Below are positions 1 through 45,900 of a stretch of 64,000 nt of DNA, piece after piece. This DNA comes from Heteronotia binoei (lineage: Eukaryota), in contig NC_083233.1 of assembly GCF_032191835.1 (NCBI RefSeq), forward strand, positions 47,244,001 to 47,308,000, written 5' to 3'. Under the pieces are notes generated by a model, which ran no database searches, was not told where the DNA came from, and was given only the letters and a program-made list of their open reading frames with translations. The translations under genes and the position numbers were made by a program. The first letter of the stretch is position 1. Each line of letters starts with the position of its first letter.

Positions 1-977
1 GGGCCACGGTGCCAGGAGGGTGTGGATAATGCCCACCCCTGTGTGAACACTGTGCTGGGCTTGATTGTGGGAGGTGGTATTACTGGGGTAGCACCTGGCC
101 TCATGCAAGGGGAACAAGGAAGCAGGTATGCGTTCCCTACCCTCGTTTACCAGTCACTGCATGGTCACCCCTTTGAGTAGAGCCTTAGGAGGTGAGATAG
201 GATTACACATTGAGACATGTTAGCCACACAGCATGGACTTTGCTCTCCCCATTGAATGGTTGCACTGAGGGCTCACCCAGTAGTGATAAGTGCCCTCTCT
301 ACTTTTCTCACTACCAAAGTGCCACAGCATTCGCTCTAAGTCCACACAGGGAGCTCTGAGACAGTCCTATGTTGCATACTGTACCTAATGAGTTCAGGCC
401 GAGGTTGTTGTAAGGCTGGGGGAGGGGATCTGGCTACCACAGGGGAGGCAGATGATTTGTTGTGTCTGTAGTTGCATCCTGGCTTCCTCTGGGCTGTTTG
501 GGTGTGTCTGCACCAGGGGTGGGTGGGGTGGGTGGTACTTGAGTTTTTGGCTTGTAAGGGCAACCGTGGGCTACAACATTTTTTTTTTTGCTGGTGTAAC
601 TTTCTGCTGCTGACTGGAGGTGGTGGTTTTTCCAGATTGAAACAGTGAAGAAAGGCAACTACCTCCTGCCATGCCCTCTAGGCCTGTCCACTTCCACACT
701 GGTGCAGGGACCTAGTCCACTGAGTGGCTGATGCAAATGCACACATTGGTTGTGAAAGCCACAGTTTGGGTTCTGTTCAACATTTCAGTAGGGATGATGA
801 GGACTCTCACAGATGAAAGGGCACACTGAGAGACTGTGGGATATAGAGAAGACCCTCCCATGTCTGTTGGGGTCTTTTTTCTGTTTAGGGCTTTTTGCAG
901 ATCAAAGGCAACACATCAGGTTGCCTTCTTCAGATTTCTCCAACATTTCACACTTATGTCCTATTTATTCATTCCAG

Positions 978-10011
<9,034 letters not shown>

Positions 10012-15414: not shown

Positions 15415-35787
<20,373 letters not shown>

Positions 35788-35805
35788 AGAACTTCAGCCC
35801 TTGAG

Positions 35806-35811
35806 AATAAA
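35806..35811 (+). terminator. OGT proximal AATAAA (further AATAAA at 36557-36562)
   Basis: Canonical hexamers downstream of the stop; which one is used cannot be told from sequence. Confidence 0.45.
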
Positions 35812-38364
35812 AACCCTTCAGGAAATGTCTGATTCCTGAGCAGAAGCAATGGGGAGCCACAGACTCCATATCTGCTTAATCTGCCTGCTTCTCTTACCAG
35901 ATGTGATCTGTGGTAGTTATCGAAGAGCACAGCCGGACTCATCTCCTGCATGATGGGGAGATGAGAAATTTTGTATCCCTTGGGGAGTTTGCAGTTGAGC
36001 TGTGTGGCCTTGCTGTGTGCCTGCAGGGAAAGGTGTGAAATGCCCAGGCAATTGTGATTTCATGGGTTAAGTTTTCCTGTGAATTAGATTTTTCTCTTCC
36101 TGCATCGATTTGGAATTGGAGCTTTTTAATATTTGGTTTTCAGGTATTCCTGTTGGTACGTATGTGGGGTTCCTCTGGCAAGATTTCTGGCTAGTGAGTG
36201 TTGCTCCTCTCAGATATTTTTCTGAGCTCTACTGACTGAAGGGTGTCTGCTGGTGAAGCTTTTTTATAGGTTTTATAAACCACTTAAGCGTATCAGCTTC
36301 ATTACTGTTTGACTTCTCTTTTGTGGACTTTTCTGTGCCATCTTGACTTAGATGAGGATTTTTAAAGCTTCATCTGTGTAAATTAATTTCAAGATGACAT
36401 CTTTTCTCTGCGAAAATTAAACTCAGTTTAAAGCTTATTCTTCCCTTCCCTCCCCCCAATACATGGAGAGAACACAACTGGGTGCCAAATGCATATTCTT
36501 CAGGAATGATAGCTACAGAGGTGCAGGCCTAGCCACTGTAGCAAATACTTTATAAAAATAAAAGCATTTGTTCAGTTTGGCCCATCAGACATGTTTCACT
36601 GTTCAAGCTTGTCAAAACAATGATGTATTTGGCCACTGGCCTCTTGACGTACTTTTCTAAGCTTCGTTTTTAAAAATGCGGCTCTTCTGTTCACCTCAGC
36701 ACAAATGCAATTCCAGGTAAGTATGGATTTTCTTTTCAGTGTCTGCCTCCAGTTTGAACAGCTTTTACCATGGTGTGTTTCTTGGCAGAGCTCCCAGAAT
36801 TTTTTTGGTTTGGTTATTTGAGAGTGCAAGACATTTAATTTATATATTAAATGAGCAAGACAGAATCATTCTTAATCTCTTCACCTACTTTGTCTGCAGG
36901 TTCTAAACAAAGCAGTGTCACTGTGGTTGGTTGTGCTGCACACGGATATATGGTATTAGATAATAGAGAAAGTTCCCTACACATACTTTTCCAACACACC
37001 CATTAGTAGACTCAGTTGATGGTGCTCAGGTATTTAACCCTGAGATATGCTTGACTGCAGTGCCAGTGGTCTTTGTTTTAGTAGCAGTTCAGTTGAGCAA
37101 GACACATGTGAGGCCCTGTGCTCAAATTGTTTCTCTACAACAGCAGTGTGCTGCTTGTTATGGCAGGTGAGGAGGACTTCTAACTCTTGCCTCTTATTGA
37201 GAGAACGTCTTAGGAGCTGATGCTGCAGCTTGAGTACACATACACCTGGATTAAATTGAAATTTGGAGTAGAGGTTAAATTAGAAACTGTCCTCAACAGA
37301 TTAAGCACTGTGTGTAGTTTTAAAATGAGAGAAGGGAATTTCCCGCCTCGAGAGTGCAGCTGTTTTTACTTGCTTGCTCACTGTATCAGTTTTTGTTTCC
37401 AGATAACTGTATGACAAATACAAATGAAAATCACTGGCTTCTTCTGTGTTGTCATCATTTGGGTGGCTGGGATCTGAAATCTGCTTTTCTTGGTAATGGT
37501 TCTAAATGAGAACATAAACCTGTGGGGATCAGCATCAGCAGTCATACACCATCAGGACAGTACAACTGGAAGAAGAGTAGGGTTTTATAACCTGCTTTTC
37601 TTTACGTCTCAAAGCAGTTTGCAGTCATATTCCTTTCCTTTCTCTCCCCCAGCAGGCACCTTGTGAGGTAGGTGGGGCCGAGATATGAGAGAACCGTGAC
37701 TGCCCCAAGACCATCCAGCGGGCTTCATATAGAGCGAGGAACTGAATCTGGTTCACCAGATAATGTGCCGGTGCACTAGCACTTTAACAAAGGAGTTAAG
37801 CAACGCTGCATCCTGGCCGCTTTTTAACTACTAAATCAACTTGGTGCAGCATCTAAAAAATCCAAGCTTTCATTTTCCAGAGCTTGTTGGTAAAATGATT
37901 CCTGCCTTATTGTATGTAGATCCCATTCACAAGTGGACTTTAGGAAAGCATTGTGCCGTTACTGCATACTTTAAAGAGGAGCAGATAAATGACCAGAAGT
38001 CCTCATCTTTACCCAAAAACATCAAAATTATAGGTGACAAATAGAAACCACAACATCGAACAATAACAACAAAAGTCTTTAAATATCTTGGCATAGTCTT
38101 ACAATCACCTGGATGTTAGCTCAGGCAATGCATGCTGCAGAGACTGCCCACAGAGCATCCTCTGCCATTCTAAGATTATGCTTTATCCCTACAGCAATCA
38201 AGGTCTTCCAAGGAAAGGTTACCCAGCTCTTATATGACTCCTAGCTTTGTATTTACAAAGAAAGGTGTTTACTGGAAGCAAGTACCCACAAACAGCCTTT
38301 GGAGTCCATGATGTTTTGCAAATGCCCTTCTTAGAGGCTAGGCTGATCTTGGAGATACATATGT

Positions 38365-38628
38365 GAAGAAGAGATTGAATTTATACTCCACCCTTCACTA
38401 CTAGAAATCTCCAAGCAACTTACAATTTCCTTCCCCTCCCCACAACAGATGTGCTGCAAAGTAGGTAAAGCTAAGAGCTCTAACAGAAACTGATCTTGAG
38501 GAACAGCTTTACAAGAACTTGTAACTGACTCAAGGTCACATCAGCAGGTACATGTGGAGGAGTGGGGAATCAAACCAGGTTCTCCCAGGTAAGAACCTGT
38601 GTACTTAACCACTAGACCAAACTGGCTA
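38365..38628 (-). mobile_element. Squam3-type SINE (older copy; another degraded copy at ~37570-37790)
   Basis: gaagaagagattgaatttata...ggggaatcaaaccaggttctccc...aaccactagaccaaactggct. Confidence 0.75.
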
Positions 38629-38889
38629 CTAGTGTCCACCTGCTGGCTATAAATCATTTTCAACCCAGTAGGTCTAGTATCCTTGATCCTTGCTGAGGGC
38701 CACCGCTCAATCTGGCAAAGAGCAATTGAGCATGGCGTCTCCCACGTTTTACTGCCTCTCGGGTATCAAAAAGCAAAACAATTGAACAGCAGTTCTGGGA
38801 TCATGCCCTGTAATTAGATATTAATGATAAGGGAAATCACAGTAATCAGGCAGTGTCAAGCAAAAAATACAATAATTGACATTTAGCTA

Positions 38890-38995
38890 AATGACTGGGG
38901 AAGGCAATGGCAAACTACCCCATAAAAAGTCTGCCGTGAAAGCAATGTCACCCCAGAGTCGAAAACGACGGGTGCTGACCACCTTTACCTTTTTA
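38890..38995 (+). mobile_element. Sauria SINE 3' fragment
   Basis: ctggggaaggcaatggcaaac...cacctttacctttt. Confidence 0.7.
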
Positions 38996-40199
38996 AAAAA
39001 ATGTATATACCATACCACAAGTATACTTTGAAAATTCTTTGTCTATAATAGAGTTAGGTGTTAATGATTTTTCAACAATGTTAAATCTTTCATCCTTTTG
39101 CACACATTACTCTAGAAAAGTCTCCACTTGGTCAGTTCTATAAGGACCAAGAGCACTTTCAAAATGCCATCTGTGGGAAAACCTGATAACTCAGAGGCTG
39201 CCATATTAAACTTAAAAAAGTACACATTTTGAAATCCAGAGATGCTCCTCTAGGTCATCCTCAACAGAAAGGAGATACATGGAAGACTTTAAAGTAAAAA
39301 GCAAACAAAAAACAAAGCTAACTATTGAACATTCACAAATTTCTCAAGATTAACAGAAGCAAGGGCCTTTGGGCAAGCCAAAGAAATATGTGCACATAGG
39401 AAAGAATTTATTTTTTCACCACTGGCTGAGAAGCAGGCTTTGCTAGGAGTTTCTCCAGGAGTGTGAAGTTATACTAAATACAATCTTTTAACAAGAACCA
39501 AACTCACAAAACTGCTTTTTGTCTAAATGCAGTGACCAAATTTATTCTAGCAGCCTCATATTGCAATTGCCAGAACTGGCATCTCAAATAGTGTTCTTTC
39601 TGGGTTCACAGTAGTTTTGGAAAGCTGTTAAAATCTCTTACCAGGGTCTCATTAGGATGTGCAAACACACCTTGCAAATTTAAAGGGCTTTGTCTCTAGC
39701 AAACTTTTATGGGCTTTGTCTCCTATGCAGTGAAGCAAGACTGCAATTTTTTTAATCCCCAGGCTTGTTTTCAGCCTTGGTGACCTCAAGGTACAGTTTC
39801 AACTTTTGTTCCTGTCTGCAGTTCTCTAAATTTCCGGGAAAGGATAAAACTCATGGAGACTTTAAATGCTTCATTGCTTTAGAAGGGATGCAATCTGGAA
39901 CCTTCCTGTTCAGTGCTGGAGATCCAGGCCAACTTGACACCATATAATGCCTCCTTTTGGCTGTGACTTTCCAAGTTAAGGTAGTAAGGGCAATCGTTCT
40001 CAGGTCCATTCTATTTACAAACAATTTCAACTAGCAGGAAAAAAGGTGGAGCTCCACCCAAGAGAACCAAACCAAGTCATACACTGATATTGAAGGAGGA
40101 GCGCAATGTTCCGTTACAGATATACAATGAATATATATACCACAGTAAGCAAATACCGGCTCCAGTGGCAGTCTCTATGGTCTTAATGAAATGAAGATG

Positions 40200-40890
40200 A
40201 CTATGAACCACGCCTACACTATGGCACAAGGCGCCTGACCATGCACTCGCTGAAATTCCGCACTCGATCACTGCGTTTCATGGGGCTGTTTCTTTGCTCC
40301 CCAGGGAACATCAATAAACCCATATCTAGGTTAAGCTCCCATTAAATACGGTCCTGTAGCGTTTTCGAAAAGAGCTGCGTTCTTTCCTCATAGTTTTACA
40401 GGCACTAACTATACATGCTGCCGCGAAGGCTTGCCAGATATTGCAGCGTGCGTGTCTGTCCGAGCCGCTTGCCAGATATTGCAGCGTGCGTGTCTGTCCG
40501 AGCCGCTTCTCTCCTCCGACCCCCCCCCCCGTTGTCACAGTAACAGTGGAACCAATGTCCGCTGAAAGGACTGTTGCGGGTTCCACCCCCTTTGCAATCA
40601 GGCGAGTGTTTGCCGTTTAAGACGCTAACGGCCACGCAGGGCAGCGGACAGCAAGGGAAGGCGAGTGAAAGAAGGAGCAGGGAGTGGCTGGGTTTAAAGA
40701 TTTTATCCTTCGCTGCCCGGAAAAGGGGACGATGCCATCTTGGGGGCGTGGCTGGCACTGAACGCTGCCGCGGTCATGCGAATGCGCGTTGCCAGGGATA
40801 TGCGGCCTAGGGGGCGGGGCCAATGAGATCGTATTTTTTGACGGCAACTCGGAGCTCCGCAGTTTCACCTCGCCCAGTTAGTTGCTATGC
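40200..40890 (+). promoter_or_regulatory. CpG-island promoter, probably of the centrin-like gene
   Basis: GC box 40811-40820; CCAAT 40820-40824; RFX X-box-like gttgccagggata 40788-40800, acggcaac 40841-40848 and gttgctatg 40881-40889. RFX control is typical of ciliary/centrosomal genes. Confidence 0.6.
40429..40508. repeat. Perfect 38-bp tandem duplication
   Basis: gcttgccagatattgcagcgtgcgtgtctgtccgagcc at 40429-40466 and 40467-40504, plus gctt. Confidence 0.95.
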
Positions 40891-42907: not shown

Positions 42908-45900
42908 GCAAGTTTCTTGGTTTATTTGCTCCCTGCATGCTGAAAGACCAAAATGGAATCCCTTGTTTATTTCAGTAGTTACAGAGGGATAGCCAGAGCC
43001 ACCTTAAGTCTGTTGCAACAATACTGAACAGGAATTTTGTTGCAAGATTAATAAGATTTTATTCCAGCACAAACTTTTGTGACCTAGTCATTTTGTGAGG
43101 TGAGTGTAATGGTTCTTACTAAGTGGATGCTTATGTATGAGGTTATGAAGAAAAAAATATATAAATGTCCAGTCAAAGGCCATGAAGTACAAGGTGAGAT
43201 ACTGCTAAGTATTTCTAATGTGATTGAAATACATCCTGCATTTTATGGCCAAACAGCATTGAAGGATGCTACAGCTATGGAAAGGCTTTTCTGCTGTAGT
43301 TATGAGAGTGCATTTTAACAAAGCAAACTATAAAAGTTTTAAGGGGGGAATTAAATATCCAGGCTCTTTTAAATCTATTTTTATGTGACAGGACTGTCTG
43401 AAAATGAGAATTTTTGAGGAAAGTTCTTTTGGAAATTCCTAGTGAACTGCCTGACCTTATTCCTTTCAACCCTATCTCTGTTTTCCTAGAACTCTCAAGT
43501 GTCATTGAATACAAAGTTCATTTTGAATTCATTTAGAATCTTCTAACAGTTGCTAAAGTATTATCAGCAGTGGGCAGCCCAATCCAGACATACGTGGCAG
43601 GTGGCTGCTCAGGGGTAGGCGGATCTACGGCGCCGCTAGTCGGCTTTCAAAGGGGCTCGCGCCGGAGTGCAGCGTGCCCTAGTGGTGGCCACCGCCAGTA
43701 GATGTGTAAGATACACTGGAGTGTGGCCTCCCTGAGCTACGCGAGGGCGGGGACAGGAGGGGGCGCTTCTGCGGGGACAGCAGGAATTGGCTGGTGGCGG
43801 GCGGGGAGCCGGGTCATGTAATGCCTGCCACCGGAGAGAGCGCTCTGCGGCAATAGGCTGCCTGCATGCCCCACCCCCTTCATGCACACACCAAGCCCCA
43901 TGGTGTGGCTGTGTAATCCATGGGGGAGCATCCGGTCAGCACTTACCACTAGTTCCATGGAGCAGGCTACCCATCAAAGGGGTGAAGCCAAGCCTCTGTC
44001 AGTGTCCCCCCCCATGGCCTGCATGGGCGGATGGCCTCACAGATGCCGCAGGGGCCCCCTGCCAGGACACAGTAGGCCACCTACTGCAGGCACCGCCAAA
44101 GGTGCCGGCGGCAGTCCCCATGGTGGCTTCCGCTCATGCCCACCCGCAGAGAATCGGACACCCATGAGGGGCATGCGACAGTGTCGAAGTGGCTGTGTGA
44201 CGCACTTGCCGCCCCCTGCCCCCAGATCCCGCTTGAATAAGGACTCCACGCAATGTGCAGGAATCAGATTTATTGAAGTGCAGGGCTCCAGAGGGAGTCA
44301 CCTTGAGGAGGAAAGGGTGTCGCCATCAGACTGTGGTAGTCCCATGGTGGTGAGGGGGTGGTGGTGGGGGAGGGTGCCAACCTATCATGGGAGTAGGTAC
44401 CGACAGCGGGAATTCACCCCCCGGCTCTTGTGCCAGCGAGTGCCACCGCGGCATTCTCGGCCACCAAGCCAAAGAGGAGAACCTTCTCTGCCCCAGTCCA
44501 GTTCGGCTGTCGGTGCCGCTCTGTCTGCCGCCATTCCTCCTACGGGCAGTGGAATGCAGGGGCTGCTGACCACAACTGGCTGATAGTGGGCACTCTCATG
44601 CCGCCCCACCCAGCTTTTGCACGGTACACCAGCAGGGCATCCGGTGGTCTCGACGGCCCCACGCCCCCACTCAGGCAGGGCCCCTCACAGCTCCAGCGGT
44701 GTCTGGAAGCTGTGGTGGAGTGCGTCGGGGCAGCAGCCAGGGCACCGTAGCCCGCGCCACATCGCGCAAACCATGGAGGCCCATGATGGGTGGTGCCCCC
44801 TCATCCCACCTCCAGAGCCCCCCCGGGTGCGGACGCTGCACATCCTCCCCGCGCTCTATGTGTGGGTTGGTGGTGGTGGAGACGTCGGGCGCGTAGATAG
44901 CGGGAGTGCCTGAGCACTTTGCGTCTTGAGGATGCCACCTGTCTGAACCGCTTCCTCTTGGACCACGCCGCCAACCAGGACCTGTGTGAGCAGTTGGCTG
45001 GCCTCCGCCCCATCCCTGTCTTGCAGTGGATCCTCATTTCCCTGCGATTCCTGGTGGCCAGCTCCTTCCAGGGCATGGTGGCTGAGGTCCTGGAGTCTCC
45101 CAGTTGTCGGCCAGCCGCTGCCTCCACTCCTTCCTAGACACCATGCTTCAGCGCCTCCAGCAGCATGTGTGGTTCCCAACAGGTGAGGTGGAGCTGAGGA
45201 CAGCCAGAGATGGCTTTGCGGCGGTCGCAGGGTTCCCCAATGTCGTGGGGGCTGTGGACTGCACGCATGTTGCCCTGGTGGCCCTGCGGGAGGATCGCAT
45301 AGTGTACTGGAACAGGCACCACTTCTACAGCCTCAATGTGCAGGCTTCATGCGACCACCAGGGAGTCTTCACAGATCTGGTGGTGAAGTTCCCAGGGAGC
45401 ATGCACGACACCCAGATCTTCACGTCCTCAGGCCTCAACCGCCTCCTGGCAGCCTGGCCAGATGGCCAGGGGTGGTTGCTAGGTAAGGCCACCAGGTGGT
45501 GGTGTAGGGTGCCCCTCCCATCCCCTGTTCTCACCTTCCTGTCCTCCACAGGTGACCGAGGGTACCTGCTGCTGCCCTACCTGCTGACGCTGTACCAGGA
45601 GGACGCGCCCGAGGACCGGGCAGCGTACAACCAGGCACACATGGCCACTCGTATGGTCCTCGAGCGTGCCTTCAGGCAGCTGAAGATGAGGTTCCGCTGC
45701 CTGCACCACACAGGTGGTCGACACAGCATGCAGCCCCTGCCTGTGGCTAAGCTGGTGGCCGTGTGCATCATGCTGCACAACATCACCACCTGGCAATGCC
45801 TGCTGGCCCCCTAGGACCTTCCCCTCCCGGACCCTGGGTTGCCAATGCGGGAGAATGAGGAGGCGGGGGCACGGGCCGCTGCCCAGCAGGACTTTGGGGG

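Follow-up and report, generated by a model that had tools for sequence, protein, structure and literature searches.

We followed up an initial annotation of a 64-kb window of Heteronotia binoei DNA (NC_083233.1, 47,244,001-47,308,000; all positions below are window-based), which carries the vertebrate OGT gene on the + strand and, in that gene's 3' untranslated region (UTR), a perfect complement to the 5' end of U1 small nuclear RNA (snRNA). The last OGT coding exon occupies 35613..35787 (+). Its translation, which ends ...PIESSESA ahead of a TAA stop codon at 35785-35787, is 89% identical to a sauropsid OGT C-terminal fragment (P0001) that has a Pfam match to Glyco_transf_41. The transcribed sequence beyond the stop codon was followed with raw RNA reads from two samples (X21 and X22, which share a species label with run X1; the reads used amounted to ~6% of each raw run and gave a depth of 17-60) and with RNA contigs from runs X1, the best-matching RNA run for the stretch, and X2 over the target region 35790-39790; junctions were reported at thresholds of a 2% share and 3 reads. 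Raw-read cover was even and unbroken from 35790 to ~37438 in both samples, and RNA contigs were collinear with the window over 35790-37491 and 35790-37436. Many molecules began or ended at 37434-37438 in both raw-read runs, with depth collapsing thereafter, and beyond ~37800 cover was lost except for repeat-derived pieces and low-depth contig traces. Continuous cover with so sharp an end defines a main 3' UTR of 1651 nt (35788..37438, +). The used poly(A) site (37417..37438, +) comprises a variant hexamer, AATACA, at 37417-37422, which precedes the ends at 37434-37438, and a GU-rich tract downstream. A proximal AATAAA (36557..36562, +), kept in bird-like relatives, caused no step in the depth of X21 or X22 reads and is therefore bypassed in this species.

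The element under study lies between these two poly(A) signals, and the coordinates first annotated for its parts (the tract with its AG, the 17 nt and GTAAGTAT) and for AATAAA 36557 were all exact in the window sequence. A 3' splice-site-like pyrimidine tract and AG (36682..36699, +) are followed by a 17-nt spacer, CACAAATGCAATTCCAG (36700..36716, +), which runs into the core element, CCAG|GTAAGTAT (36713..36724, +), with CAG at 36714-36716 and GTAAGTAT itself at 36717-36724. Given the position of the stop codon, CAG ends 929 nt after it, in agreement with the ~930 nt annotated; the U1 site is 155 nt from AATAAA 36557, and 721 nt separate the U1 complement from the used poly(A) site. The annotated perfect 11-nt match, CAGGTAAGTAT, is the same string as an antisense oligonucleotide that, together with the U1 probe CTCCCCTGCCAGGTAAGTAT, defines the U1 snRNA 5'-end complement (PMC3105408), and C36713 extends the complementarity to 12 nt, with CCAGGTAAGTAT matching the complement in that paper over U1 snRNA nt 1-12. 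The 11-mer occurs once in the 64 kb on both strands, where 0.02 occurrences are expected; a match arose in 2/100 shuffles, and the chance of a perfect 11-mer in a 1651-nt UTR is ~5e-4. Adjoining the U1 site is a strong 3' splice-site-like tract, GGATTTTCTTTTCAG (36725..36739, +), of which only CAG aligns with mammals. This tract is too near the U1 site for an intron with the U1 site as donor, and no junction at it was seen in RNA reads or contigs.

An Rfam scan of 35600-37700 with E values up to 1 returned no family, and folds of the RNA around the site, both single-sequence and alignment-based, gave z-scores of 0.2-0.5 and no covarying pairs. A switch or masking hairpin was dropped as a candidate on finding neither stable nor covarying structure in these folds. 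The same result indicates that the U1 site is probably accessible, in weakly structured mid-3' UTR sequence.

We then compared the unit with OGT relatives, which were found by a last-exon peptide search for fragment proteins and then through their contigs; one mammal contig, L019, was picked up by scanning metagenome data for a degenerate pattern derived from the window. To assess conservation we relied on pairwise alignment and on k-mers shared exactly, because a four-way MAFFT alignment misplaced GTAAGTAT and was dropped as a conservation measure. Three mammal lineages were available (L019; L020; L021-L024). L019 is a fully spliced mammal OGT mRNA (open reading frame [ORF], 214-3324) whose protein has four residue differences from the solved human OGT chain. 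The last exons of L020 and L021-L024 encode KKIRG where the human chain has KKVRG, and P0013 and P0018 likewise have KKIRG; the mammal contigs were thus not taken for human. The L019 unit reads tttctttcAG / cagaaatgaaatcccAG / GTAAGTAT, with its CAG ending 989 nt after the stop, and L020 and L021-L024 carry an identical unit 1051 and 1039 nt past their stop codons. L020 shares 97.7% identity with L021, while L019 is only ~80% identical to both across the UTR. The arrangement tttcag / cagaaatgaaatcccag / gtaagtat with 17-nt spacing, which the initial annotation had put forward for human OGT, is exact in three non-human mammal OGT 3' UTRs.

Between reptile and mammals, whose whole-UTR identity is ~46-54%, the unit keeps the same 17-nt spacing, 14/17 spacer bases and ~27/30 positions over the block, so that the conservation anticipated for it holds between the reptile and all three mammals. 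Exact blocks of at least 12 nt common to the reptile UTR and the three mammals number only two, 36261-36283 and CCAGGTAAGTAT at 36713-36724. Conservation of that order across these four extends to only 1.3% of the UTR's 12-mer positions, and the bounds of the exact conserved block are the bounds of U1 complementarity. The distance from the U1 site to the poly(A) site is ~1.1 kb in mammal M3. In mammals M2 and M3, an ATTAAA lies 48 nt downstream of the site, yet the UTR extends to ~2.1 kb; upstream of the site, no canonical poly(A) hexamer was present in the mammal UTRs.

Several other features of these UTRs were recorded. The 36261-36283 block, TTTTTATAGGTTTTATAAACCAC, is at 23 nt the longest exact block common to the reptile UTR and the three mammal UTRs, and its opening UUUUUAU string resembles a cytoplasmic polyadenylation element. 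An 11-mer conserved from reptile to mammals, TTTCAGGTATT (36138-36148), is a weak 5' splice-site-like sequence (CAG|GTATT) ~570 nt upstream of the perfect U1 complement. At ~45 nt upstream of the perfect complement, the mammals additionally carry AAA|GTGAGT, which is missing from the reptile, and mammal M1 (L019, 4314-4329) has an 8-nt tandem duplication directly after the donor, GTAAGTATATAAGTAT, that is absent from the other two mammals.

The U1 complement lies in the terminal exon of mature transcripts, upstream of the used poly(A) site, and RNA cover over 35790-37438 bears out its presence in OGT transcripts. The suggestion that it might be included only in long-UTR isoforms did not hold, since the main 3' UTR contains the site and AATAAA 36557 is bypassed. 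No junction at 36716/36717 or 36699/36700 was found among the joints listed for four RNA runs, where splicing below ~5% would be undetectable and spliced products cleared by nonsense-mediated decay (NMD) would escape the search; at their depth of 17-60, the four runs likewise contained 0 junction reads from the donor to a downstream acceptor. Contig L019, the spliced mammal mRNA, runs collinearly through the unit. With no junctions and with collinear contigs, there is no evidence for a 17-nt exon, a 3' UTR intron or NMD coupling, and the splicing first proposed at 36700 and 36716, with NMD as its consequence, was seen in neither reads nor contigs.

At 36699, all X21 and X22 reads (9/9 and 27/27) carry a G>T change that turns the acceptor AG into AT; for 36700-36724, no differences were listed. 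The acceptor half of the unit, including its AG, thus appears dispensable. These two samples differ from the window at >12 fixed positions in 1.65 kb (35849-37345), among them a GC-to-CT pair (36605/36607) and three indels (36510, 36914 and 36965), and they represent a distinct population or sister taxon despite sharing the X1 species label. The initial annotation had also described the unit as decoy-type. The published decoy is a cryptic exon inside a retained intron (PMC6097662), and by the criteria of Parra et al. 2018 the OGT unit is not one: it lies in a terminal-exon 3' UTR and not within a retained or detained intron, no low-level inclusion junctions were found, and its AG is not kept in X21 and X22.

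These observations bear most directly on the possibility that the unit is the 5' splice site of a conditional 3' UTR intron, or a 17-nt micro-exon, whose products are removed by NMD. A junction >55 nt after the stop would trigger NMD, and the arrangement would amount to a second splicing-based feedback on OGT. The pairing of acceptor-like and donor-like signals at a conserved 17-nt spacing in reptile and mammals is what such a model would predict; candidate acceptors exist downstream, for example ...ctttgtctgcag at ~36888-36899, and the weak donor-like TTTCAGGTATT is conserved upstream. NMD would, moreover, hide the isoforms at the small fraction of each raw run read and the depth attained. 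However, the junctions are missing from all four runs, the reptile mRNA contigs pass through the unit as collinearly as that of L019, and the acceptor AG is AT in X21 and X22. In addition, 17 nt is under the usual size for exon definition, and the nearest downstream acceptor-like tract is just 22 nt off. We consider this explanation unlikely, although it is the one among the alternatives that we would least readily set aside.

Outside the reptile and the mammals, four lineages (L001-L004; L008-L010; L011-L013; L014-L016) are apparently bird-like, judging by their GC-rich flanks. In all four, alignment to the window ends at ~36560-36600, ~20-40 nt past the AATAAA equivalent, and what follows is unrelated GC-rich DNA. 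The context of the proximal AATAAA is strongly conserved in these lineages, and bird-like RNA contigs (L002-L004) end just after it. The 36478-36565 block, GGTGCCAAATG...ACTGTAGCAAA...AATAAA, is conserved between the window and the bird-like relatives; in mammals its AATAAA is degraded to AATAATATA. By this comparison, the signal that terminates bird-like OGT transcripts is silent in the reptile and eroded in mammals. No U1 match of at least 9/11 was found in the bird-like lineages up to 6 kb after the stop. The unit was already present in the amniote ancestor, since both a squamate-type reptile and mammals have it; in the simplest history, it would then have disappeared from the bird-like lineages along with the distal UTR.

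We also searched five fish loci (L005, L006, L007, L017 and L018, of which L005 and L007 are a close pair). An 81-nt block around the unit had no significant match in any of the bird-like or fish loci. Fish L005 and L007 are the only loci among the bird-like and fish sets with a U1 match of at least 9/11 after the stop: they carry ttttaccAG, 11 nt and AG|GTAAGTAT (L005, 1221-1253; L007, ~1363-1395), a 10/11 match that follows the stop by ~590-600 nt and precedes an AATAAA by ~100 nt. The C terminus of the L005/L007 protein is of the type nearest to tetrapod OGT, and the fish loci with the other protein type (L006, L017 and L018) have no such U1 site. The fish site could not be aligned with the amniote block, so homology is not demonstrable, and by a rough estimate the chance of a 10-mer match in the ~12 kb of downstream sequence scanned is a few percent. 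An analogy between the fish site and the amniote unit is suggestive only.

The reading that we favor, at a little better than an even chance, is that the OGT terminal exon contains a selectively maintained, unspliced site predicted to bind U1 small nuclear ribonucleoprotein (snRNP). A perfect complement in transcripts, combined with deep conservation, makes U1-dependent control of OGT output plausible. Under such a model, U1 snRNP would dock at the 12-mer with no usable partner acceptor available, and the docked U1 would therefore act through its non-splicing functions. Three such functions may operate, alone or together: U1-70K could hinder cleavage and polyadenylation at nearby poly(A) signals, the combination of a 5' splice site with a poly(A) tail could hold OGT mRNA in the nucleus, and the same combination could route it to ZFC3H1/PAXT-exosome decay. 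On balance, OGT mRNA output would carry its own brake or gate. As an exonic enhancer, the 17 nt upstream, which are purine-rich and conserved, probably aid U1 binding. We count in favor of a U1 role that the AATAAA is silent here and terminal in relatives lacking the site.

A number of points weigh against a maintained U1 site. Both U1 binding and its consequences for OGT RNA are things we infer from the sequence. The distance to the poly(A) site, 721 nt in the reptile and ~1.1 kb in M3, is far greater than in bovine papillomavirus 1 (BPV-1) or U1A mRNA, and the site is not within ~200 nt of a regulated poly(A) signal, as it is in those two systems. The site-bearing UTR is well covered in RNA-seq, so any destabilizing effect must be partial. 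Four bird-like lineages and three fish loci manage without the site, and plain U1 docking leaves the conserved AG and the exact 17-nt spacing unexplained. Finally, mammals lack a canonical hexamer upstream of the site, indicating that poly(A) occlusion is not the whole story.

Such occlusion could nevertheless be the main role of the element, which would then serve poly(A) site choice (telescripting or occlusion) and yield the long UTR, with retention and decay unimportant. The conserved AATAAA 155 nt upstream is unused in the reptile and is the transcript end in the bird-like lineages without the site, and in M2 and M3 the ATTAAA 48 nt downstream is passed over in favor of a UTR of ~2.1 kb. 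There is also a precedent in the human immunodeficiency virus type 1 (HIV-1) 5' long terminal repeat (LTR), where a poly(A) site is rendered inactive by a 5' splice site lying downstream of it (PMC5071671). Against this, the relationship is a correlation only, as loss of the distal UTR in birds removes the site whatever its function, and mammals keep the site perfectly with no canonical hexamer upstream. We rate a role confined to poly(A) site choice as improbable, a shade below the spliced alternative.

A more elaborate version would treat the whole unit as a terminal-exon pseudo-exon that loads U2AF and U1 on every OGT transcript and anchors it in nuclear speckles, where O-GlcNAc-sensitive factors would determine both what becomes of the detained intron 4 and whether the mRNA is released or decays. 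This is speculative, and we assign it a low probability. If true, it would constitute a second, 3' UTR-borne arm of O-GlcNAc homeostasis, one dating to early amniotes or, if the fish site is homologous, to bony vertebrates. Least probable, in our view, is that the conservation has nothing to do with U1 (reflecting a protein or microRNA site or a DNA-level element) or that the U1 match is coincidental, for although other conserved islands such as the 23-nt block have no U1 link, ~6% of human 3' UTRs carry a looser 5' splice-site motif (PMC4380460) and chance perfect 11-mers in UTRs are expected when very many windows are scanned, the exact block starts and stops with U1 complementarity, few 12-mer positions in the UTR reach such conservation, terminal exons are in general depleted of the motif (PMC4380460) and a fish OGT UTR has an independent 10/11 match in a similar setting.

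The remainder of the window contains features unrelated to the U1 site. Pieces of very abundant dispersed repeats, inferred to be SINE-like (short interspersed element-like), lie at 37650-37780, 38440-38620 and 38890-38980 and reach depths of up to ~1e5 in RNA-run contigs. Joints that go back or skip between 37657-37683 and 38449-38560 are typical of copies elsewhere in the genome. Runs X4-X20, from other organisms, share 10-16% of the sampled words of the stretch, probably due to the repeats at 37650-37780 and 38440-38620. In a GC-rich region downstream of OGT, a 236-amino-acid ORF (45104-45814, +) has a full-length Pfam match to DDE_Tnp_4 (E 1e-27) and would, by this match, encode a Harbinger/PIF-type transposase or a domesticated relative. 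A ~40-nt stretch, cttgccagatattgcagcgtgcgtgtctgtccgagccgct, occurs twice in tandem at 40428-40510 and is followed by a C run, and a run of N occupies 25101-25287.

OGT levels are kept within narrow limits, and the only well-described RNA-level control of OGT that we are aware of is detained intron 4 with its poison or decoy exon. If our favored reading of a maintained U1 site is correct, U1 docking that is letter-perfect from reptile to mammals would be a second OGT control point. To our knowledge, the signal of a 5' splice site in a terminal exon is otherwise limited to viruses, U1A mRNA, disease mutations and synthetic U1 adaptors, and the OGT site would then join a very small number of natural cellular examples with deep conservation. 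It would also offer a precise 12-nt target for mutation or antisense masking, by which OGT output might be raised or lowered.

Several known systems provide a basis for comparison. A 5' splice-site sequence in a terminal exon can bind U1 snRNP and inhibit polyadenylation via U1-70K (PMC5071671; PMC3105408), the known cases being the BPV-1 late 3' UTR, the U1A/SNRPA 3' UTR and synthetic U1 adaptors or U1 interference (U1i) (PMC5071671; PMC3105408). A poly(A) signal can be silenced by a 5' splice site that lies downstream of it, the HIV-1 5' LTR being an example (PMC5071671), and an intact 5' splice site combined with a poly(A) tail leads to speckle retention and ZFC3H1/PAXT-exosome decay (PMC4380460; PMC9074902; bioRxiv 10.1101/2024.07.23.604837). 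Human OGT yields nuclear, hyperadenylated intron-retaining RNAs (PMC4618350), and OGT intron 4 is detained, with a decoy or poison exon (PMC6097662; PMC12894984; PMC4281565). Within the papers searched, we found no description of this OGT site; the kind of element is known, while its occurrence in OGT and the age of that occurrence appear novel.

The intron-4 decoy shares with the 3' UTR unit both its gene and the principle that splice signals recruit the spliceosome but lead to no productive splicing. The intron-4 decoy exons, however, lie within a retained intron and are included at a low level, whereas the 3' UTR unit is in the terminal exon, shows no inclusion and has an acceptor AG that is not fixed. 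HIV-1 5' LTR-type occlusion resembles OGT in having a strong 5' splice site ~150-200 nt past a silent poly(A) signal. It differs in that the mammal OGT site has no canonical upstream hexamer and the OGT donor has no productive intron; the AATAAA that is silent with the site in the reptile and terminal without it in bird-like lineages is a correlation only, and mammals have no hexamer there. BPV-1, U1A and the U1 adaptors, like OGT, all have an unspliced U1 5'-end complement within the terminal exon and upstream of the poly(A) site in use, and the OGT 12-mer is identical in sequence to the domain by which U1 adaptors recruit U1 (PMC3105408). In BPV-1 and U1A, the complement is within ~100-200 nt of the poly(A) site, compared to 0.7-1.1 kb in OGT. 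Unlike all of these, the OGT site has a conserved acceptor-like AG 17 nt ahead of it, and its proposed function is read from sequence. The retention and PAXT code for 5' splice-site motifs also involves an intact consensus 5' splice site kept in polyadenylated RNA, and the distance rules for such motifs (PMC4380460) allow the OGT site, mid-UTR being where the motifs are tolerated. In the studies of that code, the motif marks misprocessed RNA or is present as a reporter insert or through a disease mutation; the OGT site, in contrast, belongs to a normal, essential mRNA in which selection appears to have maintained it for >300 million years.

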